Assembly: GCF_006345805.1 (NCBI RefSeq)
Contig: NW_021832124.1
Location: forward strand, 124,001-188,000
DNA from: Octopus sinensis
Lineage: Eukaryota
Length of the DNA stretch: 64,000 nt
Direction of reading: 5' to 3'
Shown: piece after piece, positions 3,226 to 36,470 of the stretch
Layout of the letters: each line of letters opens with the position of its first letter
How positions within the stretch are numbered: position 1 is the stretch's first letter
Translations under genes and position numbers: made by a program
Notes under the pieces: generated by a model
Seen by the model: the letters and a program-made list of their open reading frames with translations, nothing else
Told to the model about the DNA's origin: nothing
The model's database searches: none

Positions 3226-3257
3226 CGTAATTTACGTCTCCACGAACAATATAAATA
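3226..3257 (+). promoter_or_regulatory. Putative core promoter CGTAATTT-N16-TATAAATA of ETS copy 1
   Basis: cgtaattt at 3226 and tataaata at 3250, ATG at 3297. The same architecture occurs at 5450 and 36252. Confidence 0.6.
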
Positions 3258-3296
3258 CGTGCTGTGCGTTCTGCGGATGACAATTACTACTTGGAA

Positions 3297-3701
3297 ATGA
3301 AGACTTGTTTATACCAATTTCTTATTGAAAACCTAAACAAGAAGTGTCCGTATCTCACGTGGATTGGGATGTCGAATTCGTTTCGCATCACCAATCCACC
3401 AGAACTTGCAAGAATGTGGGGGGAATTGAAAAACAACCCTAAGATGACGGTTGACAAGTTCAACCGCGTCTTAAGGTTGTACTACAACAACCCCAGGATC
3501 TTAAAAAGGGAAAAAGGACCAAAAAATACCTATACTTTTTATCATGATGTCCCATATCAATCTACTGAAGAATATACTTACTCGAATGCATATGAGCCCC
3601 CACTGACAGAAATTCAAAACCACTTTGGGGAGTGGAGTTATGAGGAACACCTCTTTCCGCAATATTATGATGATCTTTCAACTTATAACTTCTTTTATTA
3701 A
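3297..3701 (+). CDS. Intronless minimal ETS-domain transcription factor, copy 1 (134 aa)
   Basis: LYQFLIE..LTW..F.ITNPPELARMWG..KNNPKMTVDKFNRVLRLYY..TYTF is an ETS winged helix. Acidic/Tyr-rich tail, TATA upstream, AATAAA downstream. Confidence 0.9.
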   Translation: MKTCLYQFLIENLNKKCPYLTWIGMSNSFRITNPPELARMWGELKNNPKMTVDKFNRVLRLYYNNPRILKREKGPKNTYTFYHDVPYQSTEEYTYSNAYEPPLTEIQNHFGEWSYEEHLFPQYYDDLSTYNFFY

Positions 3702-4559
3702 AATTCTTTATTTTTTAAATAAAATTTCTACATGTTAATTGTTACATTTACACAAAAGTAAATATTAGGTCGAGAAAGTAATTATCGATTGTTTATCGAG
3801 TTCCTAAACATCGATTTTTTTACTTAGATCTGACCCGAATTTATTGATTATTGAATTTTTTATTGATTTTGATTTTTAAAATTTGTTAATACAAAAAATA
3901 AAAGTTTTAGTTGTTAATTAATTAAACTTTGTTAAATTGCTTTAAAACAAAACATTTTTTTAGACTGGTTTGTTCCCACAGTTATTAATAAAAGAAACTA
4001 ATTAACTAATTAATTCCTAACTAACTCCTAAGCTTTCGATGTGAAATTTATTGAATTTCCAATTTCTTTTACTTAATTAATTTACGTGTGCTATTTAGTC
4101 TTTCGTCGGTTGCTAAAGTTTTTTTAGTTGTTGAGTTCTGCTGTTTGTCAACACGAAAAGAACAAGAACAAACTTCGATTGTCGAAATCAACTAATTCAA
4201 TACAATATACCTATTATGAATATTTCCGAAAATGCGTATTAATAAAAAAGGTTTACCACTCTTGTTGTAATGGCATGTCAAGAACATTGGAGTCTTGTCT
4301 ATGTTGCTATTCCTGCTAAGTGGAAATTCGCAATCTTTCGTTTTTTTATACATAGAATTGGAATTCCATATTTTAGTTTAGGTCGGTCTTTAGAACATCG
4401 ATGGACGCTGTCAAAACCCTTAAAGATATGTCAATGGAAGCTATGACTGTTTGTTTTGGCGGTTCCTCTCATTGAAGCTGTCCAGGACAAATTTAAAAAG
4501 AGTTGTTAAAAAAAGTTGTTAGGTTTCGTTTTCATGTCCTGTTTGGAAACGTAAATATA

Positions 4560-5153
4560 TTATATGATTGACAAAATTTTAAAACTGATTTGAATCTGAA
4601 AATTTTTTAAATCGAATTGTTCCTTCAATTTGCTTTGATGTCTAATCTAAATTAAAAAATTTACATATTAATTCATTGTTGATCACAACGTGGTCTGCTC
4701 TTAGATCTCCATGAACCAACTTCTGTCGATAAATGTAATGCATTCCACTTGCGACACAACAAAGACACTATTTAGACTAAAGAAATCAACTTGTATTTGC
4801 TAACATGTTGACTTTGATAGTTTTTCTTTATCTTTTGCGAATTACGTCCCCAACGTGTCCTTGCTTCATAAACTCCTCTTCCATAAACTCACGATCCTTT
4901 ATTTTTTCGGGTAAAAACTTTTATAACTGACAAAAAATTCTATCAAAGGAAATATCTGATTTTCTTTGATGTAATAATTCTCGACTCCTTTGTTGTAAAC
5001 AGTACAAATTTTACGATGTTTGACGGCCATGAAGATTGCTAATTCGGAAAATTGCTGGTTGATATTCATATGACTGGTTGACATAAAACAAACTTTTTCT
5101 ATTTTAGGAAATGAAGATTTCGATTCCAAATTAAAAATTGACTCATCGGCCAC
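4560..5153 (-). pseudogene. Degenerate tyrosine-kinase-like gene fragment
   Basis: KHRKICTVY..LIEF, EFMKQG, VASGMHYIY.QKLVHGDLRADHVV..ELICK. Stops present, no DFG seen. Confidence 0.6.
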
Positions 5154-5449
5154 ACTACAAAAGAAAAAAAAGTTAAAGGACTTCGTTTGGATTAGTTAGT
5201 TCTTTGGTAACATGTTCTCTGTTTGTCTTGAGCAAGATGTCAACATGTCGTTTAAAACTTGCGGTAGGGAAATTTAAAATTTTTACGTGTCCAAAACAGC
5301 TAAATAGATTTTGGTGAATAGGAAAACAAACTCATTACCACAGAGAGCAGGTGTAAATTCATTTATATTTAATAGTTACGAGTTAACCCCGAAAACAAAC
5401 CGGACATTGCGCCGTTTTAATAAAAAAGACGTGAATTTACAAAAATTGC

Positions 5450-5481
5450 CGTAATTTACGTCTCCACGAACAATATAAATA
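5450..5481 (+). promoter_or_regulatory. Putative core promoter CGTAATTT-N16-TATAAATA of ETS copy 2
   Basis: cgtaattt at 5450, tataaata at 5474, ATG at 5521. Confidence 0.6.
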
Positions 5482-5520
5482 CGTGCTGTGCGTTCTGCGG
5501 ATGACAATTACTACTTGGAA

Positions 5521-5925
5521 ATGAAGACGTGTTTATATCAATTTCTTATTGAAAACCTAAACAAGAAGTGTCCGTATCTCACGTGGATTGGGATGTCAAA
5601 TTCGTTTCGCATCACCAATCCACCAGAACTTGCAAGAATGTGGGGGGAGTTGAAAAACAACCCTAAGATGACGGTTGACAAGTTCAACCGCGTCTTAAGG
5701 TTGTATTACAACAACCCCAGGATCTTAAGAAGAGAAAAAGGACCAAAAAATACCTATACTTTTTATCATGATGTCCCTTATCAATCTACTGAAGAATATA
5801 CTTACTCGAATGCATATGAGCCCCCACTGACTGAAAATCAAAACCACTTTGGGGAGTGGAGTTATGAGGAACGCCTCTTTCCGCAATATTATGATGATCT
5901 TTCAAATTATAACTTCTTTTATTAA
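5521..5925 (+). CDS. Intronless minimal ETS-domain transcription factor, copy 2 (134 aa)
   Basis: Intact ORF with 4 amino-acid differences from copy 1. Confidence 0.9.
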   Translation: MKTCLYQFLIENLNKKCPYLTWIGMSNSFRITNPPELARMWGELKNNPKMTVDKFNRVLRLYYNNPRILRREKGPKNTYTFYHDVPYQSTEEYTYSNAYEPPLTENQNHFGEWSYEERLFPQYYDDLSNYNFFY

Positions 5926-7269
5926 AATTTTTTATTTTTTAAATAAAATTTCTACATATTAATTGTTACATTTATACACAAAAGCAAATATTAGGTTTAG
6001 AAAGAAATTATCGATTGATTATCGACTTAGAAATTATCGATTTTTTACTTAGATCTAACCCGAATTTATTGATTATTGATTTTATATTGATTTTAGTTTT
6101 TTAATTTGTTAATTAATTAAACTTTGCTTTGATGTTAATTAATTAAACTTTGCTAGATTCCTTTAAAAAAATTTTATGAACTGTTTTGTTTTCAAAGACA
6201 GATACCCCGTCTCTTGGGAACTGCTGAGTTAAATAATTGTCTGGAAATCTTAAAGTTATTTACTTTCATTAAAATTGGAATGTTTGTGTAAATCGTGTGT
6301 TTTTTGTTGACGTTTAATCCAAATTCGACATGACTCAGTCAGGAATAAATAAAAATGTTAACTAGGCGACTTCTAGTAAATTTGCTAGTATTTTAGTTTG
6401 AGAATAAGGTTTTAAAAATGGCTAGCGAATTCCAATGCTCACAATCCTACAGCCTAGAATTTTGTGAGTCGGACAAATATGAATATCAAACTGTTGTTTA
6501 AATAAGGTGCCCACTCGGACCAGGATATGCGCAACAGAGATGTCCTTTTAAAATTACAGTCCGACCCCCCAATAAAACCCCGGCCTTGAGGGAAAAAACT
6601 TTATCTGCAATTTCTCAACAAAATGCTCATGTTCTCAACAAAACGAGCACCAGAGTAGCGAGTTAGCCCTATTCTTGCAGGTTAGCAAGATATTAAGTAG
6701 ACATCCCTACTCTCTGAGAATTGTTTCTTCCTCCTTACGGATCGCAGAATGACGCGAAATAGGTAATGAAACCGAAATGGAGCTTGTGGTGAAATCATTA
6801 CACAAGTTTTCACACGGAGGAGTAAATAAAATTGAACATGAATGTAGATATTTCACTGTCAAGAATGAGATTATCAGAAAAGTAATTTGAAATTGTAAAG
6901 TTTGCAAATTTTTGCTCCTTTAAAAGTTCAAGATTTTTTTTAATTGGACTGGTGCCCGTCTCCTGAAATCAATTCCATCCTTGTGCGGCAGAATGATTTC
7001 TGTCAACCTCCCACCTTTTTCACGCGATTTACTGTTCTCGGCAAGCTTAAAAGCCTTAAATAAAGCGATGGGGGAATCAGGCCCATCAATGTGGGTAACA
7101 CATTCGGGAGGCTTGTTGCAAAAATCATTCTTAGTGATGTTTTTCCTGATCTGAGCTTTCATTTGCTCCACCTCAGTTCGGCGTTGGGTCCAAGCAATTT
7201 ATCCTTCCACGTATTTCCAAACCTTACACTCTTAGAAGAAGTCTCTTTATCTTCTCGGGTGAGAAGTCC

Positions 7270-7920
7270 CTTTTCATTCAAGACATTCACAGTCTCGGCC
7301 ATAGAACTGTGCATTGCAAAGATATTGGTGTACTTCCGACGACTCGACGCACTTTCCGTTGTTACTGCAGCTGACGGACTCGCAGTCGTTCACTTCTAGA
7401 AATGAGTATTACATGAACTTGTGCACTCGAATTCATTCCCTTCGAAGTCATGACTGCACTCACAAACATACGAGTCTACCACTTTACTGCATTTCGCATT
7501 CTCGTCGCAAACAATCTTGCATTTGTTTATTTCTGGAATATTTCTCATCATCACCTTCACAAAATGTTTTGTTTTTTCTGGTCACTCTTGCATAGCCGTC
7601 CGCACACTTGCAAGCAAACGATTCGGCTATATTCCCACAGTACGCTCCGTCTATTTTCAGAAATTCTTTCGCACCATCACTTGCACATTTGGCGCCAAAA
7701 TGGGTGATTCAAAAATTTTTTTCCGCCAGCACTAAGAATGCACTTGTAACCTTTCCCGCCGTAGGGCGAAGAATAAGTTTTGTAGATTCGAACGCACTTT
7801 GCCCCACGTGGACAGCTGTGGAGGTTTTCCTTCCAGGGGTCAACAACTATTGGGGTCATAGATGAGGGGCTACCGTGGCACGCAAAGAAGGCGGAAAGAT
7901 TTGCAAGATTGTTTGCCAAG
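7270..7920 (-). pseudogene. Fragment of an EGF-repeat (fibrillin/Notch-like) gene with tiny introns
   Basis: FACKCADGY..FCE|EINKC..CDENAKC..SYVCECSHDFEG..ECT|EVNDCESVSCSNNGKC..CNAQFYGRDCE. Introns gtgatgatgagaaatattccag (22 nt) and gttcatgtaatactcatttctag (23 nt). The upstream repeat is degenerate. Confidence 0.75.
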
Positions 7921-8046
7921 TCAATATCAAAGTGAGCGTAATTCTTGAAAAGAGATAGCCAGTTAAAATGTCACCATGTGTTCACAAATAATGAATGTTG
8001 CCTTGTTTAGTCTGATTTTGAATTCTTCTTGAGCCACTTCATCTAC

Positions 8047-8182
8047 GAAAAAAGAAAATCCATTGAGAGAAGTCAAGATTGTCAAGCTCTGTCTTAATAT
8101 TTCTGTTGGTCAGTCTGAGGATAGATTGACAAGAGCGGCCAAAGTAATGGAACAAATGACTGGCCAAAGACCTCGCTTTTGA
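8047..8182 (+). pseudogene. RPL11: N-terminal fragment of 60S ribosomal protein L11 (uL5)
   Basis: [43 protein letters not shown]. No start codon, truncated. Confidence 0.9.
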
Positions 8183-8559
8183 AATACTATTTTATATTCC
8201 CAAATTTGGAGGCGTTTATCATAAGGAAGGCCCGAGCAATCAAGCACGTTTTGTTCACTAAAACTAACCAATTTGGTATGTTTTGTTGACTTTCTAGACT
8301 GGCAATCTGAAGAGTAATTATTTATTTACAAACCGCGCTAAATATATAACATGATCCACAATCAAGCTGATTTTTAACATTTGTGACTAAATTTTAATTT
8401 CTCCAGTCAAAAGATAATGGAATTTCATAGTTTTCCGCAAAATCTCTTTCATTTTTTAAGAAAAAAGATGTTCCATAATCATTTGTATCAAATAATTTAA
8501 TTGGTGTAGATTTGGAAGTTCATTCTCAGTCTGGGAATATTTTTAGCAGAAAAATATCA

Positions 8560-9022
8560 TATCTGTAAACGAGTTTATTTCTAGTTGGAAGGGCAAGGGG
8601 TCACATTCTACTTTCTTACTAAAATACAAAGATGAAAAATGTCGAGACGTAATCAGTCAACGAAGTAACTGTCCTAAAGAAAAATTTATTTATTATATAT
8701 TTTGGAGTTTCAAGCAGTGATCCAATCTACGCTTTTAAAGAAAATTTGTCTTATACATAGGTTGATACTCGTTGGTCATCTTGAGGCCTTTTGTAATGAG
8801 AAATAAATTCAATTCGTGAGAAAAAAAATAACTACACCTTTTTACGCATATGGATGGATCAGACTTAATTTTTGTCTCTTGTATACATAGAATAAAAACT
8901 TTATATATTTTAAGGTCTGCACAGAGAATATTTCTTGACTGAGGATTAAATACTTCTTTTGCATTAAACGTAAGAATCTTTAGGACAAGCATATTCTCCT
9001 GTATCTTCTGCTTTCTAGACAT
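8560..9022 (-). mobile_element. AP-endonuclease remnant of an RTE-like LINE
   Basis: LKILTFNAK..ADLKIYKVFILCIQETKI. Confidence 0.65.
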
Positions 9023-9039
9023 TTTTCTTGACAGTTATA

Positions 9040-9270: not shown

Positions 9271-10382
9271 ACATTATAAAAGTGCTAATAATTTAGTAAT
9301 GTAATATTCAATATTAGTCTGTCGACTTTTTTCTCTTTGTATTTTAAGGCAATAATGACACGTTGATTGTGTTTGGGCAACGAGGCAAAACAATTTATGT
9401 GGGAAAAGTAGTTGGAGAATATTCCACAAATTACGTCTTCTTCAGAGACAAGTAGATTGGGTAATTGTCCTGGGCAAGAAGGAATCCGATGGTCGTTTGG
9501 GGGACTTGAGTGGCGTTCTGAGTGTCCGAAATAGGCTTCTCATGGTTTTGGCCAAAAACTTTTGGGGTTTGTAGGTAAGCTTTTCTGAATCTCCCAATAG
9601 GTTTTTTGAGAAGAATGTGCGCAAGTTCTTCTTTACTAATGACGTCTCTTCTTTCCCTCTTCTATGCACAGTGTGAATGGAGCGAAGCAAGATAGTCGTA
9701 ACCAATCCTCAGAGTCGTCCGAAGAAAGTGCCTTTTTGATACACTCACATAGACAGTCCGCGACAGATATACGGGGAGCTTTGAAATCCTGATCAGGAGT
9801 ATTCGTGTATGTGTCAGGTTTGAGATCAAATATTTCCTGATGGTCTAGTTGGGCATGTTTAGAAGGGTAGCATATGGAAGAGTTTGTCGCATTATCTGGT
9901 TGGAGACATTCCCGACAATATCAATCAAAAATACCGCCAGGGGTCTTTTAGTCATTCCGGAACAGGACATGTGGAAGCCACAGAGCAGGCCGTGCAATGG
10001 ATCATTCTCCTTCTTTTGTTCATCGTGCTGCATCTTCTTTTGCAGTTTTTTGCATGTTCTTTTCAGATTTTTTTTTTCTTTTTCTCTTATTTGTTTTCTT
10101 CTTCACACCACAATACCACAACAATTTCTTCGTAAATTTTCTTATATAATAGATTTGGATATTTATTATTTTTATGATGAAACAGCACGCAGTATAAACT
10201 CATTTTTTGAATTTTTTAGGCCACTGTAACTTCAAAAAAGTACACATTTTGTGGAATTCTCCTTGCAATAATCTTTTTTCCAGTCGGACTCACTTGATGT
10301 TATTTAATGGCTGACGATAAAATTGTCACTACCCAACCAGTTCAGGCCTAACTAATCGAACATTTCATTTTCTTGTTATTTA

Positions 10383-12130: not shown

Positions 12131-12137
12131 TGTTTAA

Positions 12138-12900: not shown

Positions 12901-12930
12901 TTTTTATAACGGACACACATAAGGACTTTT

Positions 12931-13438: not shown

Positions 13439-14005
13439 CTAAGTAATTTTACTAAGTCCAGAGCCTTCGAAGTGAGCAGAAGGTGGCACTCCACGCACCT
13501 CCTCCCCTTCTTCCTCCTCTTCTCTGGCACTGTAGACCTTCGAGAAGGTGCAGTCCAGCGCCTCTCGCTGACTAAACGTCAGGAAAGGGCTGGATCGGCG
13601 AGCATCAAACGAGACACTTTCCAGAGTCCTCTTAAGAACAGTTGACTGTATATAAGCCTGTAGAGACTTATCTACATCCAACTGTCTTAAGTACCGCTTG
13701 TGGTATTTGGTGACCAGTCCATCCCATGTCATCACACACGGGATGACATGGACTTTGCACTGGTGCATCAGTCCTAGCTCGTTTGCAAGGAGGTCATACT
13801 TCCTCCTTTTCTCCACTTCCACTATCTGCAAACGGTCTAGGCACGTGATGCCCACCTCCACGATAACAATCTCCCCGGTGACCTTATCGTGGACCACAAT
13901 GTCGGGTCTGTTGTGCTGGACAACAATCGAGGTGCGTATGGGGGTATCCACCTTAATGCACACCCGCGAGTTCTCACACACCGATTGAACTCGATGGGTT
14001 CGCAA
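13439..14005 (-). mobile_element. 5'-truncated R4-like non-LTR retrotransposon (RLE domain)
   Basis: NRPDIVVHDK..IVEVGIT..EKRRKYDLLANEL..WDGLVT..YIQSTVLKRTLES. Confidence 0.9.
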
Positions 14006-20649: not shown

Positions 20650-20925
20650 GAAATTTCAATAAACCAGATATTTTTGTCCATGACAAGATGAGGAATACAA
20701 TTACACTCATTGAAGTTGGTATTACCTCACAAAATTGCCTAAAGCAAATTGAAGTGGAAAAGTTCCACAAATATGACCTTTTGCAAATGAATTAGGGGCG
20801 ATTCATCGGGCTAAAGTGAAGATAATCCCTGTTGTACTTACTTGGGATGGAATCGTCTCAAGATTCTTCAAAAGTCATCAGGATTCTATCGCAGTGGAAG
20901 ACAGAGAGAAGGCATATATCCAAAA
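20650..20925 (+). mobile_element. R4-like RLE-domain remnant
   Basis: NKPDIFVHDK..LIEVGIT..EKFHKYDL..VLTWDGIVS. Confidence 0.85.
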
Positions 20926-21138
20926 AATGCTATTACTTTACTTTTTGTGTATTTCATTTGCAATTCCATGATATTATTTAATTTAGCAAAATTTGTGAAC
21001 TAAATCATAGTTCCTGTTTATTAATTGTTCAATTATGTAATTGTTTTTATTAATAAATTAATTTAATTTATGTAAGGAATTATGTAAGAAATTACGTTTT
21101 AGAAAATAATAAAACCCGACTTGTGACGTTTTTTAGAA

Positions 21139-22163
21139 ATGGATTCTTTTTTTAACCCAGTAGTTTCAAACTCTAAAAATTTGTACATTCCTAATTATTT
21201 TTACCCCACTGTTGATAACCAATATATTTCCGATTTTTATCTAAATAATTTAAACTCGGTCAATTATTTTGAAACTGTTCCTATTAAAATGTCAAACAAC
21301 GTATTTGCTTCATTCGATACTCCAAATAACGGTTCTTTCTTATTCCACACCGAAAGGCCAATAAATCATTTTTCAGGATTCAATCACCCTGAATTTATGT
21401 TTTACGACAATCAACAAGAAATTGGAAATTCTTATTGTCCCTTTGATGGCTGTATATATAACTCTTCATATATTCATCCTTCCGAGGTTCATTATGACGA
21501 TGTGTTCTGTCCTTCTGAAATTCAGATTAATCCTTATACATATCCGCAATTTTATAAACCTCATATTATCGACTATCCACAAACAAATAGACAACCATCT
21601 CCTTTTTTGAAATACAAAATTCAATCTTTACCAAAAACTTCACAAATAAATAAAAACTCCACTATTTCATCTGAAATCCAAACCCCCTCTAAAAACATTG
21701 ATTTAATCCCAAGTACTTTTACTAATAATTTGAAACAAGTTTGTGTCACCTCTGAACAGTTTGACACGAAAATTTTGAGTGAAAACAACCGTTCTCCTAC
21801 CAAAATAAACTTTAAAGACAGAAAGCCGGCCGAATTATCAAATAAAGATCAAAACAGTTTGGCAAAGTAATATTTTTTGATACTTTATTGTTTAGGATTG
21901 AAAAGAAAAGAAAAAATGCACTTCGTATGAAAATTCTACGACAAGAAGAACACAAACAAATAAATGAATTAAAGAAGAAGTTGAATATCACCAGTAAAAC
22001 CCAAGTGGAAACCTTAACAAAAATAGCCGCGGGATTGGAACAGACAAAAGAAACAGTTATGGAAAATATGCTGCATTCTTTTATGAAAATGGGGGCTTTC
22101 ATAAATGAGATACACGGAAATAGCCACGATGAATACAAGGACAAACAGGACTTATTTTTATAA
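21139..22163 (+). CDS. Divergent bZIP-like transcription factor (2 exons, 331 aa)
   Basis: A 29-nt intron at 21867-21895 (gtaatattttttgatactttattgtttag) joins the two ORFs in frame. KIEKKRKNALRMKILRQEEHKQINEL has N-x7-R-x9-L spacing. The N-terminus is low-complexity N/S/P/Y/F. Confidence 0.6.
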
Positions 22164-22398: not shown

Positions 22399-22908
22399 CT
22401 AAAATATAATTTTATTTTTGTCAAAAATACCGTTTTTGTCATCTTTCTTATACTCTTTATCTTCTTTTTGATCTTCGTCGCATCTCTTTTGATCTTTTTC
22501 TTGGTCTCGAAGTGCTTTTGGTTTTCTGTTGACACACACTTTTGGGATTTCCAAATTTCTCATAAAATTTGTATATGTCCGTCTTTTATCGACGACATCT
22601 GATAAAATAATTGTTATACTAATCAAACAATATATTTGGCAGTCATCAGTTGTGATAGGGTCTGGTAGTCTTATAAATTTGGCTCTTGGATTATCCCATT
22701 GACGCATAGCTTCTCTCTCGATATCTAAAAACGCATCCCAACGTTTGCCCCAAATGTCATCATTCATTGTATTTGAATCGTCCCATTCTCTCCACAGAGA
22801 TTGTCTTTGTGTCTCATTTTGGCTATTCCTGTTGATGTCTGACCACTCATCAGCTTTACATCGACATGGAATTCTCATGCAAGTACAGTTGTGATTATCT
22901 TCAGGCAT
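22399..22908 (-). CDS. Intronless orphan protein (169 aa; CxC..CxC N-terminus, Trp/Asp-rich core, charged tail)
   Basis: Intact ATG-to-stop ORF with TATAAATA about 34 nt upstream. No recognised homology. Confidence 0.55.
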   Translation of the reverse strand: MPEDNHNCTCMRIPCRCKADEWSDINRNSQNETQRQSLWREWDDSNTMNDDIWGKRWDAFLDIEREAMRQWDNPRAKFIRLPDPITTDDCQIYCLISITIILSDVVDKRRTYTNFMRNLEIPKVCVNRKPKALRDQEKDQKRCDEDQKEDKEYKKDDKNGIFDKNKIIF

Positions 22909-23873
22909 ATTTGATCGTTAACGCGTAAATAATATCGACTGTATTTATAGTCGATTTGGGGCGTTTCGGCTTAATAAAATTAGAAAATCAAGAAAAAATA
23001 CGGCATTGACGCGTAATTTACCTTTAAAATAGTAAGAAAATATATTTTATTACTAATATTTTTTCAATATATTATTAGTAAAAAAAAGAATCCTGAAACA
23101 GTTTTTATTTACTCTCTTTGCATAACACAAATTCTTGAGTTTAGCCATTTCCTCAATTGCTTGTAAAAGACTATTGACTGAGTCTTTAAATAATAATTTC
23201 AAATTACCTTAGTAGTTCTTTTATCTTTAGACTAATGAAAACCAGCAAATTTTGCTCAAAAACTTGTCTTGCTATATAGACAAACACTTCAGTTAAGGCA
23301 AACACATTTATTTATTATAGAGAAAAATTTTGATGAGAATATAATCTCCAGCTACTTCTTGTAGTAATTCTACTTCCGGTTGTATAAAAATGGGAAACAT
23401 TTTTTTAAACACATGTTCCATCATTTCTATACCACAATGTACCAGTCAGCCAGGCGCCGCTTACAAATCTCTTACACTGACCGTTACACTGACCTTCAAT
23501 TAAGGTTAATCTGTGAATTTATCGATAAACTTCAAACAATCTTATTAAATTCAAATAAATATCATTGAAAAAAAACCTTATTATTGAATTATCAAATGCA
23601 AAAATAATTAATTTAATTAAGCTTTTTAATCCTGTCCATCCCGACTATAGACTTTCCCCCATTTGAGTGTTTAATCTATTAAATAAATTTAAAACTACCT
23701 CTACGCGATTATTCGACAAAATATTTATTATTTCAGCTGGTGGATAGTACTGTGATTCGAATTTATCCAGTCGCAACGAAGGATTAGTTCAAAATCAAAA
23801 CAAATTTTCTTTATTTCCTGATTCTTAAACTCAGACTCATTATCTGACAAGAATTTGACATGGCCGTTAAAAT

Positions 23874-25158: not shown

Positions 25159-25182
25159 ACACCAACTCAAATTGGCCATACG

Positions 25183-26050
25183 ATGTCCTCGACTTACATG
25201 ATGAGGTCCTTAAAACCTTCCCCCCAAAAAAATTAAAAAAAAATTTTCTGCATTTTGGTTAAAATGAACAACTACAATGTCCTCGACTTACATGATGAAG
25301 TCCTTAAAACCTTCCCCCCAAAAAAAATTAAAAAAAAATTTTCTGCATTTTGGTTAAAATGAACAACTACAATGTCCTCGACTTACATGATGAAGTCCTT
25401 AAAACCTTCCCCCCCAAAAAAATAAAAAAAAATTTTCTGCATTTTGGTAAAATGAACAACTACAATGTCCTCGACTTACATGATGAAGTCTTAAAACCTT
25501 CCCCCCCAAAAAAATTAAAAAAAAATTTTCTGCATTTTGGTTAAAATGAACACTACAATGTCCTCGACTTACATGATGAAGTCCTTAAAACCTTCCCCCC
25601 AAAAAAAATTAAAAAAAAATTTTCTGCATTTTGGTTAAAATGAACAACTACAATGTCCTCGACTTACATGATGAAGTCCTTAAAACCTTCCCCCCCAAAA
25701 AAATAAAAAAAAATTTTCTGCATTTTGGTTAAAATGAACAACTACAATGTCCTCGACTTACATGATGAAGTCCTTAAAACCTTCCCCCCAAAAAAAATTA
25801 AAAAAAAAATTTTCTGCATTTTGGTTAAAATGAACAACTACAATGTCCTCAACTTACATGATGAAGTCCTTAAAACCTTCCCCCCAAAAAAAATTAAAAA
25901 AAAATTTTCTGCATTTTGGTTAAAATGAACAACTACAATGTCCTCGACTTACATGATGAAGTCCTTAAAACCTTTCCCCCAAAAAATCAAAAAATTATTT
26001 TCTGCATTTTGATTAAAATGAACAACGCGAATGTCCTCGACATTAATGAT
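25183..26050 (+). repeat. Tandem array of ~94-bp units (about 9 units) in the outer Helitron
   Basis: Unit aaaatgaacaactacaatgtcctcgacttacatgatgaagtccttaaaacctt-C6/7-A7tt-A8/9-ttttctgcattttggtt, period 93-96 bp. Confidence 0.97.
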
Positions 26051-26519
26051 GAGGTCCATTAAAACCTTCAAGGCAAAAATCTCACGTATTAAGAATATCC
26101 TTGATGAAAACGACAGCGAGAATATTAACAATGATGAACTCAAAATTATTCGCGATAAAGAAATTCAATTCATCCTATGTTTTTCTCTTTAAAATTAAAT
26201 GCATATATCATTATCGACCATGAATCAAAATTAAAGCTATTATCATATTTGACTTTGACAGAATGTGCAATCACAGATTGCACGACTTGAATAGAGTGTG
26301 CAAGTAACAGATTTAGAAAAACCACTTTGATAGTTGAAACCACATTAGCACAATCATTAACACAATTTACCACCAATTGACGCACGACCTTGAATAGAGT
26401 GTGCAATTAACAGATTTTGAAAACACTTTGATAGTTGAAACCACATTAGCACAACCATTAACACAATTTACCACCAATTGACAGCGCAATCAGAAGAATT
26501 TGCGTAAAAATATTAACTA

Positions 26520-29100
26520 CTAGCTCGGCAGCTCGCTTCGCTCACCGCGACCTAGCTCCTGCGGAGGGCCTGTTTCATCAAACAACTATAAGTTTATGTA
26601 GATGTATAAAACTACCTGGTTTAATGTAACCCTATTCTATCGCCTGTTGATAAACGATGTTGTCGTCCGTCCTTCCTTGGCATATATGAATAAATTTTCT
26701 CTTCTGCCTACCCTCGAGCATCCCACATACAGCTGTCCATGTGAAAAGCACTCACTCTCTAAAAATAACCCAACTACCTTTAATGACTGTCCCTGGGCCT
26801 TGTTTATTGTCATTGCAAAACTCATCCTCAAGGAAATTGCAGCCTTTTAAATCTAAATGGTAATTCATCAGAAATTATCGGAATTCGTGGAATATAAACA
26901 TCCTCACCTCAATACTTACCTGTTAATATCGTCGCCTCTATTACGTTAGCCATCTTTCTTCAGCTTCATTTTTCCTCCTTCGGTATCTATTTAAAAATTA
27001 TTTTTGAATAATAAAAAATATTAGGAAAAGAGGCATACAGAAAATAATTCTATCTTACGAAAAACTTCTTTTCTTAAGGTCGTCTTCCCTCTTTCGGTTA
27101 TCTATTGAAAAAAATTTTTGAATAATAAAAAATTTAGGAAAAGAGGCATACCGAAAATAAATTCTATCTTCACGAAAAACTTAACTAAATAGCTAATATT
27201 TTTACGCAAATTCTTCTGATTGCGCTGTCAATTGGTGGTAAATTGTGTTAATGATTGTGCTAATGTGGTTTCAACTATCAAAGTGTTTTTCAAAATCAGT
27301 TAATTGCACACTCTATTCAAGGTCGTGCGTCAATTGGTGGTAAATTGTGTTAATGATTGTGCTAATCTGGTTTCAACTATCAAAGTGGTTTTTCAAAATC
27401 TGTTAATTGCACACTCTATTCAAAGTCGTGCAATCTGTGATTGCACATTCTGTCAAAGTCAAATATGATAATAGCTTTAATTTTGATTCATGGTCGATAA
27501 TGATATATGCATTTAATTTTAAAGAGAAAAACATAGGATGAATTGAATTTCTTTATCGCGAATAATTGGGAGTTCATCATTGTTAATATTCTCGCTGTCG
27601 TTTTCATCAAGGATATTCTTAATACGTGAGATTTTTGCCTTGAAGGTTTTAATGGACCTCATCATGAATGTCGAGGACATTCGCGTTGTTCATTTTAATC
27701 AAAATGCAGAAAATAATTTTTTGATTTTTTGGGGGGGAAGGTTTTAAGGACTTCATCATGTAAGTCGAGGACATTGTAGTTGTTCATTTTAACCAAAATG
27801 CAGAAAATTTTTTTTTAATTTTTTTTGGGGGGGAAGGTTTTAAGGACTTCATCATGTAAGTTGAGGACATTGTAGTTGTTCATTTTAACCAAAATGCAGA
27901 AAATTTTTTTTTAATTTTTTTGGGGGGGAAGGTTTTAAGGACTTCATCATGTAAGTCGAGGACATTGTAGTTGTTCATTTTAACCAAAATGCAGAAATTT
28001 TTTTTTAATTTTTTTTGGGGGGGAGGTTTTAAGGACTTCATCATGTAAGTCGAGGACATTGTAGTTGTTCATTTTAACCAAAATGCAGAAAATTTTTTTT
28101 TAATTTTTTTGGGGGGGAAGGTTTTAAGGACTTCATCATGTAAGTCGAGGACATTGTAGTTGTTCATTTTAACCAAAATGCAGAAAATTTTTTTTTAATT
28201 TTTTTTGGGGGGAAGGTTTTAAGGACTTCATCATGTAAGTCGAGGACATTGTAGTTGTTCATTTTAACCAAAATGCAGAAAATTTTTTTTTAATTTTTTT
28301 TGGGGGGAAGGTTTTAAGGACCTCATCATGTAAGTCGAGGACATTGTAGTTGTTCATTTTAACCAAAATGCAGAAATTTTTTTTTAATTTTTTTGGGGGG
28401 GAAGGTTTTAAGGACTTCATCATGTAAGTCGAGGACATTGTAGTTGTTCATTTTAACCAAAATGCAGAAAATTTTTTTTTAATTTTTTTGGGGGGAAGGT
28501 TTTAAGGACTTCATCATGTAAGTCGAGGACATTGTAGTTGTTCATTTTAACCAAAATGCAGAAATTTTTTTTTAATTTTTTTTGGGGGGAAGGTTTTAAG
28601 GACTTCATCATGTAAGTCGAGGACATTGTAGTTGTTCATTTTAACCAAAATGCAGAAAATTTTTTTTAATTTTTTTTGGGGGGAAGGTTTTAAGGACCTC
28701 ATCATGTAAGTCGAGGACATTGTAGTTGTTCATTTTAACCAAAATGCAGAAATTTTTTTTAATTTTTTTTGGGGGGGAAGGTTTTAAGGACTTCATCATG
28801 TAAGTCGAGGACATTGTAGTTGTTCATTTTAACCAAAATGCAGAAAATTTTTTTTTAATTTTTTTGGGGGGGAAGGTTTTAAGGACTTCATCATGTAAGT
28901 CGAGGACATTGTAGTTGTTCATTTTAACCAAAATGCAGAAAATTTTTTTTTAATTTTTTTGGGGGGGAAGGTTTTAAGGACCTCATCATGTAAGTCGAGG
29001 ACATCGTATTGCCAATTTGAAGTTGGTGTGCACACACAGACAGACAGACAGACAGACAGACACACAGACAGACACACACCATACCATTTTATTATTAAGA
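26520..29100 (-). mobile_element. Non-autonomous Helitron (inner copy), same family, opposite orientation
   Basis: 5' TCTTAATAATAAAATGG at 29100 and 3' CTAG at 26520-26523, inserted at an A|T of the outer copy. Helicase remnant [33 protein letters not shown] at about 26637-26960. Confidence 0.92.
27650..29005 (-). repeat. Tandem array of the same ~94-bp unit (about 14 units) in the inner Helitron
   Basis: Reverse complement of the outer array with more units. Confidence 0.97.
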
Positions 29101-29729
29101 TTTACTTGAGTTTTTCGTAAAGATAGAATTTATTTTCGGTATGCCTCTTTTCCTAAACTTTTTTATTATTCAAAAATAATTTTTTAAATAGATAACCGAA
29201 GGAGGAAAAACGAAACTGAAGAAAAAACGGTCAGCTTAATAAGGTAATTAATTAAAATCTTTTTTGTGTGTCGCTTTCTTGCCTGCCGCATTCCGCCTGC
29301 CGTATCTCCCCCTGCCCCATTTCCGCCAGTAAAAAATAAAAAAAGAAAAAAAAGGAAATTACAAAGGAAAAATGAAAAAAATAAAATAAAAAAAAAATAA
29401 ACCACAAAAAATGAAAAAAAAGTTTGCAATGACAATAAACAAGGCCCAGGGACAGTCATTAAAGGTAGTTGGGTTATTTTTAGAGAGTGAGTGCTTTTCA
29501 CATGGACAGCTGTATGTGGGATGCTCGAGGGTAGGCAGAAGAGAAATTTATTCATATATGCCAAGGAAGGACGGACGACAAACATCGTTTATCAACAGGC
29601 GATAGAATAGGGTTACATTAAACCAGGTAGTTTTATACATCTACATAAACTTATAGTTGTTTGATGAAACAGGCCCTCCGCAGGAGCTAGGTCGCGGTGA
29701 GCGAAGCGAGCTGCCGAGCTAGTAATTTG

Positions 29730-30879: not shown

Positions 30880-31760
30880 AAAAACAATTCCGCAGAAACT
30901 TGATTTGTGCCCGACACATATTATGCATGTCCAATCAATTTCATTTCTTTCCAGGATGCCAATTAGTGTAGTTCATAAAATAAATTGATATATATTAGAT
31001 CAACCATACCATCAAGTCTTCCATCAATGTCGAATCTCGTTCTTTTGTTATGACTCCAAATTCGAGAAGCTCTAACTTACATTGTATATGTGAAAGTCAA
31101 TTTGTCTATTACGAGCTTCAAATTTACAATTAAAAACTTCATTCTCTTGTAATAAAGACAATCCCTCTTGAAAGCTGAAATGGAAATGGATAATTAGTCC
31201 CAACCTTTGACTGTAATTAAAAAAGAGGACAAGTCCACATGAAATGACCGCAAAAACCCACAGACTTTCCATCCGATTTGTTATGTTAGAAAAAATCAAA
31301 CCAACTACAATCAGTCTCTGATGAATGGACAGCTCGTTTCCAACAGAATTACTAGCCCGACAGGTGTAGATTCCCTGTCTATTAGGCAGAGTGGTGCCAC
31401 GATCAACTTCCATATGCGGAACAAACAGCTTTCATTGACAGGGAAATAAAATTTAGCATTTCCGTACCCTCCGCGGGGGTATAAGACAGGGGAACTCACG
31501 TGCGTGGAAACTACTCCAATCTCATTAAGGAATACGGGCAAAGCAATGGAGGATGACGGACAGCACAATACTGTTGTCAGAGCCAAGACAATCGAATATT
31601 CCGCTGTCGCTGGAAACGGAGGGCCTGGTAATGAAAACGGACGAATTGACAACAGCACGTCTTTGCTCCAGGAAACCCCCGAAAATGGGATGTTATATGT
31701 TCTGTGGTATGGATGAAGAATGTGGGCCTCTGGCATCCCCTTCATCACTGTTCGTTTAAT
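30880..31760 (-). pseudogene. Fragment of an Ig-superfamily receptor gene (Ig domain + TM-like segment)
   Basis: LPNRQGIYTCRASNSVG (Ig C-terminal motif) followed by a hydrophobic stretch LWVFAVISCGLVLFF. Broken frames. Confidence 0.5.
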
Positions 31761-32019
31761 ACAGGGGTCGGCAGGATTTTTGTTTTCGCGGGCCAAAATT
31801 TTATTTTTTGTATGCGATCCGGGTCAAACGAGAAAAAATCCTTATCGGTCGCAAAAATAACGATATAATAAAATCCTCTTGGCTGAGACAGAGGATCTCG
31901 TTTCGTTTTCAATCGTGAACGGTAACGCACAAACTATCTGTTTTGCTTGGAACGAACCGTTCCAGGGCAACGCTTGCAGATTTATTAGTTAAAAATAATT
32001 ACAAAGAAGTGAATTTATT

Positions 32020-32200
32020 TTAGTCATTAATCTTACTAGTTGCTAAACGTAATATATCGTTAAGATGTGAATCAGTCATCCTCCTTCTCAGACAATTTTT
32101 TACATTATTCATTTTGGAGAATAACTGTTCACATAAAAATGTGTTTCCAAATTTACAAGCCATTTTCTTAGTATTACGGTTAATTTTGGATATTTTTTGA
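32020..32200 (-). mobile_element. hAT (SPIN/GTF2IRD2-like) dimerisation-domain remnant
   Basis: FGNTFLCEQLFSKMN..RRRMTDSHLNDILRLATS. Confidence 0.8.
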
Positions 32201-32339
32201 CACATACAAAATTTTTGTAGAAGGTTAAAATATTTAATTCCGAAAAATATTTTGATTAAACTGTAGTGTCGCATTGAATTTAAGTAATTCCATTTGATAA
32301 CAACCTGGTACTGTCTCAATTTCAACATCAAATGGGATT

Positions 32340-32860
32340 GATTGTTGTTGTTGCGTAACCCCAATCTCACCTTAGATTATAAGACCAGCAGCTTGCAGAA
32401 ACAACAGCGCTCTCCCAGGTTGCTCCCATAGGACCTCCGGGGAGTGAATGACAAATTTTTTGCGGAGCGAAAGAAGATCAGGACAGCGGAATAGATGGGC
32501 AGTTGTCTGTTCGTCAGCACAGCAAATGGGACAAAAGGGGGAGATCGACATGTCCATTCTATGTGTATAGTGGTTTAATGAGGAGTAATTACCAGAACGG
32601 AAACGAGCCAAGTTTGTCTGAGTCGAACGATCGAGAAGCAATTCAGAAGGGTGAACGTCAGGAGGAGGTTTATTGAGTACAGAGTTCGGAGTCAGCTTAA
32701 GAATTGCTGACGTAGATATCGAATCGTGAATTCTCTTTATTAGATATGGACATTGGTCCAGGCCATCAATAATAGCAATGATCCGGGAATATAGATTTGC
32801 CAGCGTGTTCTTCACTGAACAAGAATTTCCGTTTAGCACATGTAGGGCAGAGCAAGGATG
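32340..32860 (-). mobile_element. 3' end of an I-group-like LINE with a (CAA)n tail
   Basis: PPPDVHPSELLL..LARFRSG..CPICCADEQTTAHLFRC..LWEQP, then ggggttacgcaacaacaacaa. Confidence 0.8.
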
Positions 32861-33156
32861 ACGAAAATTTCCAAATTACACAACATTACCCCAACTCCGC
32901 TTGACCAACTTATTAAGAAAGATGGAAAGGGTTTCTTAGCCATCCAACAAGACCACCTGCCAAAAGACTTTAACAATCAGAAGCACATCACCCCGATTCA
33001 ATTCCTCACAAAACTGCTCCCCGCCCGTCCCGCACTTGCGTTGGGTCCAGAGTCCAACATCGGGAAAAGCTGAGAAAGATTTTGAGGATTGTTAGAATCA
33101 CCTAATTAATTACCCTAATTAACTGTTGGTGATTCTTGGGTTAAAATAATAAAATA

Positions 33157-34625
33157 CAGTAAAACCTCTGGTGCTCGCCATTTTCGGGACCGAAGAAAAA
33201 ATGGCGAGCAATAGAATTTGGCGAGCAATGGAAATAATCAATAAATTTTTTGACTTTGAAATTTTGAAAACATCTCGGTTTTCGATACTTTCCGATCATA
33301 AGTGAGCTTTCCAACTCATATTTGAGCAAAGAAACAATGAAAATCGAAAGAAATTAAAAGGAAAAAATTAACTAAAAAAATCTTTATAGTTTTTTTTAAT
33401 TCAGCCATATCTCTAATAACGGTGTCAATTAGTTCTAACGAATTTATATCAAAATTTTCATTTTGATAAAAGAATGACTTTATTCTTTTCAACATTTTCA
33501 AAGCCTTTTCTGAATTCACATGAGATTCGTCATTATGAGTATTTTCATCGTCATATTTTTGTGGGAAAGAATCTCCAGCAATATTAAGGTAATCTTCAAT
33601 TTCATCTATTTCGGTAAATTCATGATTAATAAAATCATCTTTATCCACCGGGTCCAATATTTTCAAGATATTTACCATTTGATCATAATTATCAATTTCA
33701 ACAGTTGGTCTTTCGAGTTGATTTTCACATTCGATCCATTTTGAATTTCCGAAACAATTTGTAATTGTTTTGGTCGCTACTTTTTTCCAGGCAAAATATG
33801 TAAAAAGAAAACCGTCTTTTAAAGTTAATTTTTTATGAGCTTCCAGTGGATTTTCTCCATTTTCAATTTTTTCTAACATAAACTCAAATTTAAGTTTATT
33901 AAAATTTCCTTTGAAGGATCTAATGATTCCTTGATCCATTGGTTGTAGAATTGTTGTAGTCTTCGAAGGTAGGTAAAGAACTTCAATTGACTCTAAATCA
34001 GCGTAAAGTTGATGGGATGGGCATCGATCCACAACTAAAAGAATTTTTCGTTTTTTAGATGCCTATCCCATGTTAAAAGCCATTCGTTAAAAATTTTACT
34101 TGTCATCCATGCTTTTGGTGAATGACAGTAATCGACAAAATTTTCGACTTTAAAATTTTTAAAGCAGCGAGGTTTCTGGAACTTTCCAATCATAAGTGGA
34201 TTTTTTGTCTGTCTCAGTCATATTTGAGCATAGCAACAAAGAAAATCTGAAAAATAAATAAAAATTAAACCGTTCTTTAAGGATTTTATGTCCATATCAA
34301 ACCTTCTGACAAACACTTTTTAAAGGGATCGATTTGTAAAAAATCCCAGTTTCATCAGCGTTATAAATGTTTTCAGCATTATATTGTTGAATCTTTGCAG
34401 AGATCAAAGAAGTAAATGCATCAATTTCTTGTTTCTGATCAACTTTTATATAAAAAATAGTTTAACCAAAAAAAATATTATTAAAAATTAATGGCGAGAT
34501 TTAGAAAATGGCGAGCAATAGAATATTTATCAAAATTTACTAGAAATTTTTAATTTTTTGAAAAATATGTGGCGAGCAATAGAGGTGGCGAGTAACAGAG
34601 GTGGCGAGCACCAGAGGTTTTACTG
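33157..34625 (-). mobile_element. pogo/Tigger DNA transposon (DDE_1), N-terminally deleted
   Basis: Perfect 24-bp TIRs cagtaaaacctctggtgctcgcca, TA TSDs and ggcgagcaataga subterminal repeats. NIYNADETG..KER..LPSKTTTILQPMDQGII, with a stop and a frameshift. Confidence 0.95.
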
Positions 34626-35879
34626 TAATAATGTTGCGGAAGACCTAAGAAAGCATGCAAGCCGAGACAAGGCATGGGTAATCGATGCCTGTTGAAGAGG
34701 TGGCCCCTGAATCTAGACTGCGCATGAATGAATCCGCCCATCCGTGCACTCAACGTGGGCCCTAAGAGGTTAAAATTGATGAAATAAAACACTAAAAAAA
34801 ATGAAAACGGAAACTGAATAACTATTAATTATAATTTATGTTTGGTTAAGAGGGATAGTATGTATAATCTGTTCAGAATTCTTAAAAACGTTCTTAGAAA
34901 TCAATCCTATAAAAAAGTATGGAAATGGGTCGACTCTCCGTGAGATACATCAAATGGCTTTTTGTTCTTTGATCCACGTTTTTTGAAGCTCACAGAAAAC
35001 TGGAACGGCAGTTAAGTGTATATTCTCGGAATATTACAAGAAAGTCGAGAAACCAGAAAGTATTTGCCAACTGCCAGCGTGATTTCCTAGAAAAGATTGT
35101 GTTACAAAATACTATTAAAAGTATTACAAACATCCAGCTTAAAATATAAAAGAAATGTCCACGTAATTTCTTAAACCCGTAGGTTTACCGGAGATTTGAC
35201 ACTAGCACAGTGCATACACCACTGCATACCTTTTTCTTGCGCTATTGAGACTCTCTCCATGAGAGACCTGCGTTAAAATTTAAATTTTTTCTAAATATAC
35301 AATATAATCAGATTGAAACTAATATTGAAATGTTTAGTCTTCAAGCAGGATAATTCCTGAATTTAGTTTATATAACGCATACAGTCTTATGTGCAGTACC
35401 TGACCTTAAAAAACCCTGAAAAGTATCTCCTTTTGTGTTTGAATTAGGCGATAATTGTTGGGATGCACACATAAGAATGTTTTCAGAATCATTGAGGAGG
35501 ACTAAAATGATGTATGTGAGCTTTATCTTTGTGCGTACTAAGAATATTGTCATTTAATTAACTATTTAATAAATTTTTGATCGCTGTAACCTTTTGACTC
35601 AAAAAAGCATTTTTTAATTTCAATATCTTCAATGATAAGAGTTTTTAGAAATTATTAAAATCAAATGTAGTTATTGTCTGGTCAAATTACATAATTAAAA
35701 AGGAGAACTTAATTATGATTCCCGAATAAAAACGATTTTTCTATAATCAATATTAACTTCCGAACGATAATTACTCAAATCTTTTTTCCCAGATCATAAA
35801 GTCAAATATATTTCGACGTATTAATTAAAAAAAACTTACAATTATTTATTTAAACCCAAGGAAATTGTTAAAAAAAACC

Positions 35880-36085
35880 TAGCTATTAAGTACTGGCTTG
35901 CAGGATTGAAAGACAATTCCCGCGTAAAACAGCCAGCGAGATCCTCTGAATAAGGAATATAAATTCCCTGAGATCTCTGGAGCGATAGGTGCACAGACGG
36001 CCAAGCTTTTTAAGATGAGCAAGCGTATTGGCCCCAAAAACACAGGAAGTCTCGACGGCAATTGCCCAAAAACAATGCATCATTA
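35880..36085 (-). mobile_element. Short 3' fragment of a CRE element
   Basis: AIAVETS.VFG..LIQRISLAVLRGNCLSIL. Confidence 0.75.
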
Positions 36086-36251
36086 AAAAAATATTTGATC
36101 TTGAATATTAAAATCAGTCGCAATCAGTGAAAAATTAGGATTAATAAAAATTAAAGGTCGTAAATAAACAAAGTTTTCATTAATTGATAAATCACAAAAT
36201 ATTGTTTATAAGATAAAAAAAGAAGTATTGGAAAAGAAATTTAACAGCGAA

Positions 36252-36282
36252 CGTAATTTTCACTAATTAACAAGTATAAATA
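36252..36282 (+). promoter_or_regulatory. Putative core promoter CGTAATTT-N15-TATAAATA
   Basis: cgtaattt at 36252, tataaata at 36275, ATG at 36321. Confidence 0.55.
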
Positions 36283-36320
36283 CTGTATCGGGACGGGTTA
36301 AAATCTAACCGAATCAAAAA

Positions 36321-36470
36321 ATGGAACAGATTGTGGCTATAGAAAACGAGGATTTTTACGAGATTGAAGATCTATATTGTTTTGCGGAAGAGAGGTCTCT
36401 GGACCAATTATTTCAGCAATTTTCCAATGATCAGGAGGAACAATTAATCCTCTACAATTATTATGACTAA
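36321..36470 (+). CDS. 49-aa acidic/aromatic micro-ORF
   Basis: MEQIVAIENEDFYEIEDLYCFAEERSLDQLFQQFSNDQEEQLILYNYYD*. aaaaaATG context, TATA upstream, AATAAA about 30 nt downstream. Below the length cutoff of the ORF track. Confidence 0.55.
   Translation: MEQIVAIENEDFYEIEDLYCFAEERSLDQLFQQFSNDQEEQLILYNYYD

Follow-up and report, generated by a model that had tools for sequence, protein, structure and literature searches.

The split between TATA-box and TATA-less promoters, which runs along the line between regulated and housekeeping genes, is general from yeast to mammals. In snRNA-type promoters (PSE–TATA in animals and USE–TATA in plants), an upstream element additionally stands at a fixed distance from the TATA box. 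Dicyemids, from which the DNA studied here probably derives to judge by its short introns, are ~30-cell parasites with four life-cycle stages and genomes among the most reduced of any animal; to our knowledge, nothing is known about how these stages are specified.

We analyzed a 64,000-nt stretch of the Octopus sinensis assembly, hereafter the window, in which the octamer CGTAATTT recurs ahead of a TATA box in two ETS genes and a 49-aa open reading frame (ORF). As in focused TATA-box promoters elsewhere, a TATAWAWR match (TATAAATA) lies at a fixed short distance before the gene start. The box is carried by small, lineage-specific genes in the window (ETS being the one gene tested for lineage specificity), whereas it is missing from the intron-containing NRDE-2, TTI1, rhomboid, snurportin and GPCR genes and from the single-exon proline dehydrogenase gene. 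These promoters differ from the known type in sharing an identical 9-mer in all members and in their very short implied leaders, since transcription starting ~30 nt past the TATA start would leave only ~10–17 nt before the ATG. With snRNA-type promoters, they have in common a short upstream word ~1.5–2 helical turns from the TATA box at unrelated genes, but here protein-coding ORFs followed by AATAAA lie downstream and the spacing rule applies to two independent promoters. An snRNA-type reading was dropped, as a search of the window against Rfam yielded neither an snRNA nor any other RNA family.

A TATA-box promoter class

Across the window, the 9-mer TATAAATAC is found at just four sites, before ETS1 (3250–3258, plus strand), ETS2 (5474–5482, plus strand), the 49-aa ORF (36275–36283, plus strand) and a 169-aa orphan gene (22941–22949, minus strand), each time 41–47 nt ahead of an ATG beginning an ORF of 49 codons or more. 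Such an ATG stands at +41 to +47 from 1.4% of window positions, and the probability of this placement at three independent sites is 2.7e-6 for a class that was itself defined after looking at the data, independently of the octamer. At 3250, 5474, 36275 and 22949 (minus strand), TATAAATA(C) fits the TATAWAWR consensus, and the 8-mer TATAAATA is found 15 times in the window against 6.3 expected, a count reached in none of 100 shuffles. The TATA-box promoter class is real.

The octamer occupies plus-strand positions 3226, 5450 and 36252 and TATAAATA positions 3250, 5474 and 36275, exactly where the original prediction had put them. Its distance to the TATA box, also as predicted, is 24, 24 and 23 nt from start to start (gaps of 16, 16 and 15 nt) for ETS1, ETS2 and the 49-aa ORF, and their ATGs (3297, 5521 and 36321) follow 47, 47 and 46 nt past the TATA start. 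The composite CGTAATTT-N15–16-TATAAATA is present three times in the window against 0.00 in shuffles, for a word chosen post hoc; by chance, the strict composite would be expected ~0.03 times per Mb. What had been proposed as one shared fixed-spacing promoter divides into two parts: the TATA–ATG architecture is stronger than claimed and the octamer spacing stands in two independent promoters, while in the orphan and a 331-aa gene the octamer is inverted and lies at other distances. AACAA, a further shared element before the TATA box, was treated as TATA context only because its spacing from the octamer varies by 2 nt from promoter to promoter.

In the 49-aa acidic ORF (36321–36470, plus strand), the octamer (36252–36259) lies 23 nt ahead of the TATA start, and AATAAA follows at 36501, 30 nt past the stop. 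No Pfam family was found for it, and an exact look-up returned no gene call on record; the same look-up for a 155-aa ORF close to the right-hand end of the window also found no record. The idea that it is a paralog of the acidic, aromatic ETS C-terminus (EE.L..YYD) received no support from tblastn. Retroelement remnants adjoin this ORF at 35842–36123.

For the orphan gene (22399–22908, minus strand, 169 aa, ATG at 22908), the TATA box begins 41 nt ahead of the ATG, its TATAAATA part reading from 22949 to 22942. The octamer (23012–23019, plus strand, antisense to the gene) lies 63 nt upstream of this box, and the match widens to the 10-mer CGTAATTTAC, shared with ETS. The encoded protein has a Trp-rich N-terminal half and a Lys/Asp/Glu-rich tail; a Pfam or PDB match was not found, and a single-sequence AlphaFold2 model (pLDDT 41) was unusable.

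The neighboring 331-aa gene (21139–22163, plus strand) consists of exons 21139–21866 and 21896–22163, and removal of the 29-nt intron at 21867–21895 yields one open 331-aa frame. Here, the octamer (21089–21096, minus strand, antisense) ends 43 nt ahead of the ATG at 21139 and a canonical TATA box is absent. Both reverse-orientation octamers thus exist as predicted. Retroelement remnants also lie next to this gene (20700–20930).

The ETS pair and its invariant upstream block

ETS1 (3297–3701, plus strand) is a single-exon gene for a 134-aa protein with the ETS domain at residues 4–81 (Pfam Ets, 64.6 bits, E = 1.1e-17, cut-off 26.9). Among PDB sequences, its product comes closest to FLI1, ERG and ETS1 (E = 2e-15), with which it shares a full-length ETS domain. 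Both recognition-helix arginines are retained (KFNRVLRLYY versus KLSRALRYYY), preserving the R-x-x-R-x-Y-Y of the FLI1 alignment. Unlike those proteins, the one encoded here comprises just 134 aa, starts its domain at residue 4 and lacks a PNT or other domain, and its gene is intronless and tandemly duplicated. An exhaustive HMMER search of 1.84 billion representatives recovered generic ETS domains only, at no more than 43–48% domain identity; a word-indexed search for orthologs and paralogs matched solely the protein of the window itself, and a metagenome scan for relatives found nothing.

ETS2 (5521–5925, plus strand, 134 aa) is 97% identical to ETS1 in protein sequence, and the 12 differences among 405 coding positions comprise eight synonymous and four non-synonymous changes. 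The two copies had been called duplicates, and the alignment of 3121–3974 with 5346–6190 at 92% identity bears this out. Their differences are unevenly spread. The ETS1 core-promoter and leader block (3217–3296, plus strand), which contains the octamer, the TATA box and a presumed short 5′ untranslated region, shows 0 of 80, against 11 of 96 in the distal upstream region and 49 of 275 in the 3′ flank (Fisher p = 5e-6). This identical block starts 10 nt ahead of the octamer and runs up to the ATG, whereas flanking noncoding DNA is 11–18% different. Within it, the ETS1 octamer (3226–3233; duplicate copy at 5450–5457 in ETS2, both plus strand) forms part of an 11-nt palindrome, CGTAA-T-TTACG (3226–3236), whose arms CGTAA and TTACG are, by direct reading, perfectly complementary. 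The 0 of 80 count, with the ETS pair as the one comparison, suggests purifying selection on the octamer-bearing block.

A recent short gene-conversion tract would also explain the identity and would make it uninformative on octamer function. Conversion acts readily on tandem paralogs such as these, separated by 2.2 kb, and the difference-free run from 3216 to 3304 (89 nt) is unbroken, as a single tract would be. Such a tract, however, would have had to match the TATA box, leader and upstream element exactly and end after the first 9 coding nt, beyond which synonymous differences reappear (3305, 3314). The rest of the ETS unit has diverged by 3–18%, so conversion is not homogenizing the copies generally, and we regard this explanation as markedly improbable.

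The octamer and the role of chance

In the window, CGTAATTT occurs nine times against 4.3 expected, a number reached by 3 of 100 shuffles. Four copies had escaped the original prediction: 9428 (minus), 35162 (plus), 55073 (plus) and 55942 (minus), the last two inside the proline dehydrogenase coding sequence. None of the ATGs of NRDE-2 (20357), snurportin (53867) and proline dehydrogenase (54989), all three provisional and taken from ORFs, has an octamer within the preceding 150 nt, and a scan of an extra 6.6 kb of upstream sequence (L001) found no new motif instance. Flanks are alike between promoter and nonpromoter copies.

Comparison of the 80 nt preceding each of the three independent TATAAATAC boxes yields a single shared 8-mer, CGTAATTT/AAATTACG, and four control windows placed 80–400 nt further upstream contained no shared 8-mer. 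Within the TATAAATAC class, such sharing has p = 0.001 for words of this rarity, 0.016 for any word and 0.009 under an order-3 Markov model. The constrained ETS block contains 26 8-mers; comparing these with the sequence at matching offsets (±1) in the remaining two TATAAATAC promoters gave p = 0.0036. These values suggest that word sharing within the class, defined post hoc, is nonrandom.

They also weigh against the possibility that these promoters share nothing but the TATA box and that the octamer is a post hoc coincidence in AT-rich promoter DNA with no common regulator, as does the location of the octamer within an ETS block free of substitutions. Several observations speak for coincidence. 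Once post hoc gene choice is allowed, the significance of the shared word drops to ~0.15–0.36: in 36% of random 14-site sets, some two sites have an 8-mer in common at ±1 offset; the real data hold a second, meaningless pair of this kind (24791/41292); and the four-promoter result of 1.5e-4 becomes ~0.15 when multiplied by the ~1,000 ways to pick four of ~14 gene starts. Four of the nine octamers lie away from promoters, and one-mismatch variants are not enriched in the window (87 versus 106 expected). In two of the four genes, the octamer is oriented and spaced differently, and the 49-aa ORF promoter has neither the palindrome nor the 10-mer. With three independent promoters in total, two of which agree in fixed spacing and orientation, we hold coincidence to be a substantial possibility that stops short of being probable.

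Descent of the promoters from one copied promoter, for instance as transposable element cargo, would be another route to a common word, and the retroelement remnants beside the 49-aa ORF and the 331-aa gene fit it. Against this, local alignment detects AACAA(G)TATAAATAC only (z = 2, p = 0.04) and no homology between other pairs, a self-BLAST of the window finds no repeat joining the loci, and the orientation and placement of the element remnants leave the octamer outside them. As the promoters lack homology elsewhere, the word did not arrive by promoter copying, an origin that we find hardly credible. A shared upstream site is probably present at these promoters, and a single co-regulated gene set is plausible, if unproven.

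Candidate factor site and contig origin

The reading we prefer, and to which we give an even chance, is a TATA-promoter class in dicyemid genes with the octamer as the site of one factor. We take the promoters to be TBP-dependent core promoters of RNA polymerase II, of the canonical focused TATA-box kind. Their class is defined by TATAAATAC at 41–47 nt before the ATG, and its genes appear to form a small set, compact, single-exon and fast-evolving, in an animal genome that is itself very compact and most likely that of a dicyemid. The functional ETS promoter appears to be tiny: constraint sets in only 33 nt ahead of the TATA box, and at the center of this stretch lies the palindrome CGTAA-T-TTACG. 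This palindrome is most likely the predicted site of a sequence-specific activator bound about two helical turns upstream of TBP. At the neighboring 331-aa gene and in the remaining two TATAAATAC promoters, the octamer is probably, not certainly, the same predicted site. If the site is the same in all, the genes would be targets of one factor; we infer factor binding, co-regulation and stage specificity.

As for the kind of factor, CGTAATTT holds a TAATT core, which we take to be that of Antp-class homeodomain sites, and three of the four promoter octamer copies have an ACGTAA flank, presumably a bZIP half-site; either kind of factor could putatively read the word. The TAATT core occurs very frequently in a genome of 34% GC. 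The 331-aa gene had been labeled bZIP-like, a label that did not survive Pfam analysis of its spliced C-terminal 122 aa (bZIP absent at E ≤ 10), and a bZIP identity was also rejected in the PDB (no match at E ≤ 10). A homeodomain signature (WF.NRR-type pattern) is absent from all six reading frames of the window, and a Pfam search of the 140 open frames that reach 75 aa or more detected no homeobox and, of this kind, only the transposase HTH_32. With the bZIP label unsupported and no homeodomain found in the window, the proposed module of small transcription regulators comes down to ETS, the one member demonstrable as a transcription factor.

A broader version, in which the composite of CGTAATTT, 15–16 nt, TATAAATAC, ~45 nt and ATG marks a genome-wide dicyemid battery switched by stage through a single factor, seems to us unlikely. 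Such a battery would consist of tiny, intronless, fast-evolving genes, including the ETS-domain-only factor and the 49-aa acidic microprotein. Were the module real, dicyemids would have their first described cis-regulatory code; a 60-nt promoter readable from sequence would permit genome-wide prediction of stage-specific gene batteries, and the ETS-only factor and unannotated micro-ORFs would be candidate regulators. As it stands, the locus offers an ordinary TATA-box promoter class and a statistically suggestive shared word.

A more immediately useful by-product is that a 303-kb Octopus sinensis reference contig, VCDQ01000438.1 of GCA_006345805.1, appears to be parasite DNA, probably of a dicyemid within the octopus assembly. 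Homology searches with window proteins returned no proteins from a sister genome. A synteny search with NRDE-2 produced no match, the protein of the window itself included, and the best matches to the retroelement reverse transcriptase were at most 49% identical and came from unrelated metagenomes. An assembly of Dicyema japonicum is available as RDEW00000000 (PMC6736024), and RNA-seq resolved by stage (nematogen, rhombogen, vermiform and infusoriform) has been published for this species (PRJNA496385, PMC6854800). Spliceosomal introns of Dicyema are mostly shorter than 30 nt, with a median of 27 bp (PMC6543705). The window contains introns of this dicyemid-like type, one being the 29-nt intron of the 331-aa gene and another a 27-nt intron at 50267–50293, whose removal joins one 7tm_1 match and raises its score from 47 to 74 bits. 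Many more 23–29-nt intron candidates occur in the ORFs of conserved genes, for example in the TTI1 region at 44.8–47.4 kb.

Promoter architecture at the ETS genes and the 49-aa ORF

The octamer CGTAATTT lies on the forward strand at 3226, 5450 and 36252, upstream of the tandem duplicate ETS-domain genes ETS1 (3297–3701) and ETS2 (5521–5925) and of a 49-aa ORF (36321–36470, +), and is followed on the same strand by the TATA octamer TATAAATA at 3250, 5474 and 36275. The two words start 24, 24 and 23 nt apart, and the ATGs (3297, 5521 and 36321) follow the TATA starts by 47, 47 and 46 nt. All these coordinates and TATA–ATG distances match the original prediction exactly, and the observation of a shared octamer–TATA arrangement is confirmed. 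The inverted octamers described for two further genes were also present: one at 21089–21096 (−), 43 nt before the ATG (21139) of a 331-aa gene (21139–22163, +) whose promoter contains no canonical TATA box, and one at 23012–23019, which is antisense to the orphan (a 169-aa gene, 22399–22908, −) and precedes that gene's TATAAATA (22949–22942) by 63 nt. The proposed fixed-spacing promoter, with its constant orientation, is limited to two independent promoters, the ETS pair counting once, and does not extend to the orphan and the 331-aa gene, where the word is inverted and stands at other distances.

The longer TATA 9-mer TATAAATAC is identical in ETS1, ETS2, the 49-aa ORF and the orphan and has no other copies in the window. 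In all four cases, an ATG opening at least 49 codons follows 41–47 nt downstream, a placement found for 1.4% of window positions, giving P = 2.7 × 10^-6 for the three independent sites. The same placement speaks for the 49-aa ORF being a genuine transcription unit. AATAAA occurs 30 nt past its stop and 16 nt past the ETS stops, although in AT-rich DNA such a signal counts for little. This is a real promoter class, somewhat better defined than originally described, and represents a fresh instance of a familiar promoter organization in an unusual, poorly studied organism. Separately, a 95-nt inverted repeat (4157–4249 versus 62914–63007, 86% identity) carries a TATAAATA site in its right-end copy (62943–62950, −).

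Chance and constraint in the upstream word

Four octamer copies absent from the original prediction were found at 9428 (−), 35162 (+), 55073 (+) and 55942 (−), two of them within the proline dehydrogenase coding sequence. The latter two lie on opposite strands with GT directly 5' (GTCGTAATTT), and the gene itself (54989–56305) is apparently one 438-codon exon. The window total of nine copies compares with 4.3 expected (at least nine in 3 of 100 shuffles); one-mismatch versions in the window were not enriched (87 versus 106 expected), and 6.6 kb of extra upstream sequence yielded no new instance.

How strong the octamer sharing appears depends on the post hoc freedom granted. For the 14 independent TATAAATA sites, a pair sharing an 8-mer at the same offset ±1 turns up in 36% of random sets, and the real data contain a second, meaningless pair of this kind. 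A rare 8-mer common to four fixed promoters has p = 1.5 × 10^-4, which free choice of four from ~14 gene starts (~1,000-fold) raises to ~0.15. We defined an objective class as all TATAAATAC sites, three of them independent. The constrained ETS block contains 26 8-mers, and a match of these to one of the remaining two promoters at an equal offset (±1) had p = 0.0036. AAATTACG is the sole 8-mer that recurs in every one of the 80-nt stretches preceding the three boxes. Such sharing has a null probability of 0.016 when any word counts, 0.001 when the word must be this rare and 0.009 with an order-3 Markov model; four control windows farther upstream of the boxes contained no common 8-mer. The compared promoter regions have no homology besides the shared word, so its inheritance through a copied promoter is very unlikely. 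An 11-nt palindrome and the 10-mer CGTAATTTAC are common to ETS and the orphan and missing from the 49-aa ORF. Overall, we regard the shared upstream word as suggestive and consider it about as likely as not that the octamer marks a genuine site common to these promoters.

Comparison of the ETS copies addresses the same region from another side. Within the duplicated unit (3121–3974 versus 5346–6190), the copies differ at 11 of 96 distal upstream positions (3121–3216), at none of 80 in the core block (3217–3296), at 12 of 405 coding positions and at 49 of 275 in the 3' flank. The core block departs from the remaining non-coding DNA of the unit (Fisher p = 5 × 10^-6), and 0/80 would arise by chance with a probability of ~5 × 10^-4 even at a 9% neutral rate. 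Against the diverged flanks, this identity suggests that constraint sets in just 33 nt before the TATA box. The ETS1 octamer sits mid-stretch as part of the perfect palindrome CGTAA-T-TTACG (3226–3236), and these patterns point to a function of the octamer region in the ETS genes. A short gene-conversion tract exactly matching the promoter would also leave an identical block but is less likely, because synonymous differences return 9 nt into the coding sequence. Four of the 11 distal differences are packed into 8 nt (3208–3215 versus 5431–5438; CGCAAATTCGC versus CGTGAATTTAC) directly 5' of the invariant block, a sharp upstream edge of constraint.

Gene products and the regulon proposal

ETS1 and ETS2 are intronless and encode 134-aa proteins with a complete ETS domain at residues 4–81 (Pfam E = 1 × 10^-17), differing by eight synonymous and four non-synonymous changes. 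Among solved structures they come nearest to FLI1, ERG and ETS1; the arginines of the recognition helix are retained. A search of 1.84 billion representative proteins gave no relative above a generic single-ETS-domain score, with domain identities of at most 43–48%. Both members of this ETS-domain-only pair have an acidic, aromatic C-terminal tail. The bZIP-like label given to the 331-aa gene was dropped, as neither exon nor the spliced C terminus matched a bZIP model or solved structure. Searches including Pfam returned no matches for the orphan or the 49-aa ORF, nor did PDB for the orphan, whose structure prediction was too poor for use. The N-terminal half of the orphan contains regularly spaced tryptophans (W22, W38, W41, W53, W57 and W71), several 18–19 residues apart; the spacing resembles Myb/SANT or MADF repeats, although no profile or PDB entry matched.

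In the likeliest mechanism, TBP/TFIID on TATAAATAC would set initiation ~30 nt downstream, giving leaders of 10–17 nt, and a sequence-specific factor bound some two helical turns farther upstream, at the CGTAATTT element, would govern the timing of firing. The word contains TAATT, a candidate homeodomain core, and most copies also give ACGTAA, a candidate bZIP-type half-site. No homeodomain signature motif occurs in any of the six reading frames of the window, and a Pfam scan of its longer open frames gave no homeobox match. The regulon reading is a reasonable hypothesis from sequence, but one stage-specific regulon of transcription regulators goes beyond the evidence, since ETS alone is a demonstrable DNA-binding protein.

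Origin of the DNA and its repeats

The window does not look like octopus DNA, being gene-dense, with tiny introns and 34% GC; CpG is not depleted. Over 64 kb it carries NRDE-2, TTI1, rhomboid, a rhodopsin-type GPCR, snurportin and proline dehydrogenase, together with LINE, Tc1 and pogo remnants. A 29-nt intron (21867–21895) links both exons of the 331-aa gene, a 27-nt intron (50267–50293) lets two GPCR fragments be read as a single uninterrupted 7tm_1 match (47 to 74 bits), and many 23–29-nt candidates interrupt the frames of other conserved genes, for example, in the TTI1 region (44.8–47.4 kb). Introns of this size are a known mark of dicyemids, with a median of 27 bp (PMC6543705); for Dicyema japonicum, genome GC content is 36.7% and repeats make up 49% (PMC6736024). 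This species inhabits the renal sacs of O. sinensis (PMC6854800). The ETS protein is recorded on VCDQ01000438.1 (303 kb, GCA_006345805.1), of which the window covers bases 124001–188000. From its tiny introns, gene density, GC and repeat richness, together with the host link, we infer that this contig is probably dicyemid parasite DNA within the host Octopus sinensis assembly.

Degenerate C-terminal ends of one retroelement protein family, with motifs such as ...VIP.V.TWDG... and ...LRGNCLSI..., occur at 836–1354 (−), 13439–14005 (−), 20700–20930 (+), 35886–36083 (−) and 56984–57073; two lie directly beside a promoter, one at the 331-aa gene and one at the 49-aa ORF, with the octamer outside them. 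A 94-nt satellite forms two inverted arrays at 25179–26069 (9.4 copies) and 27642–29008 (14.4 copies) with 95–96% matches, bordered by an inverted pair of 99% identity (26515–26819 versus 29423–29727) and by smaller tandem repeats of 101–114 nt. Together, these satellites and flanking repeats make up a palindromic block of ~4.5 kb with strong GC skew.
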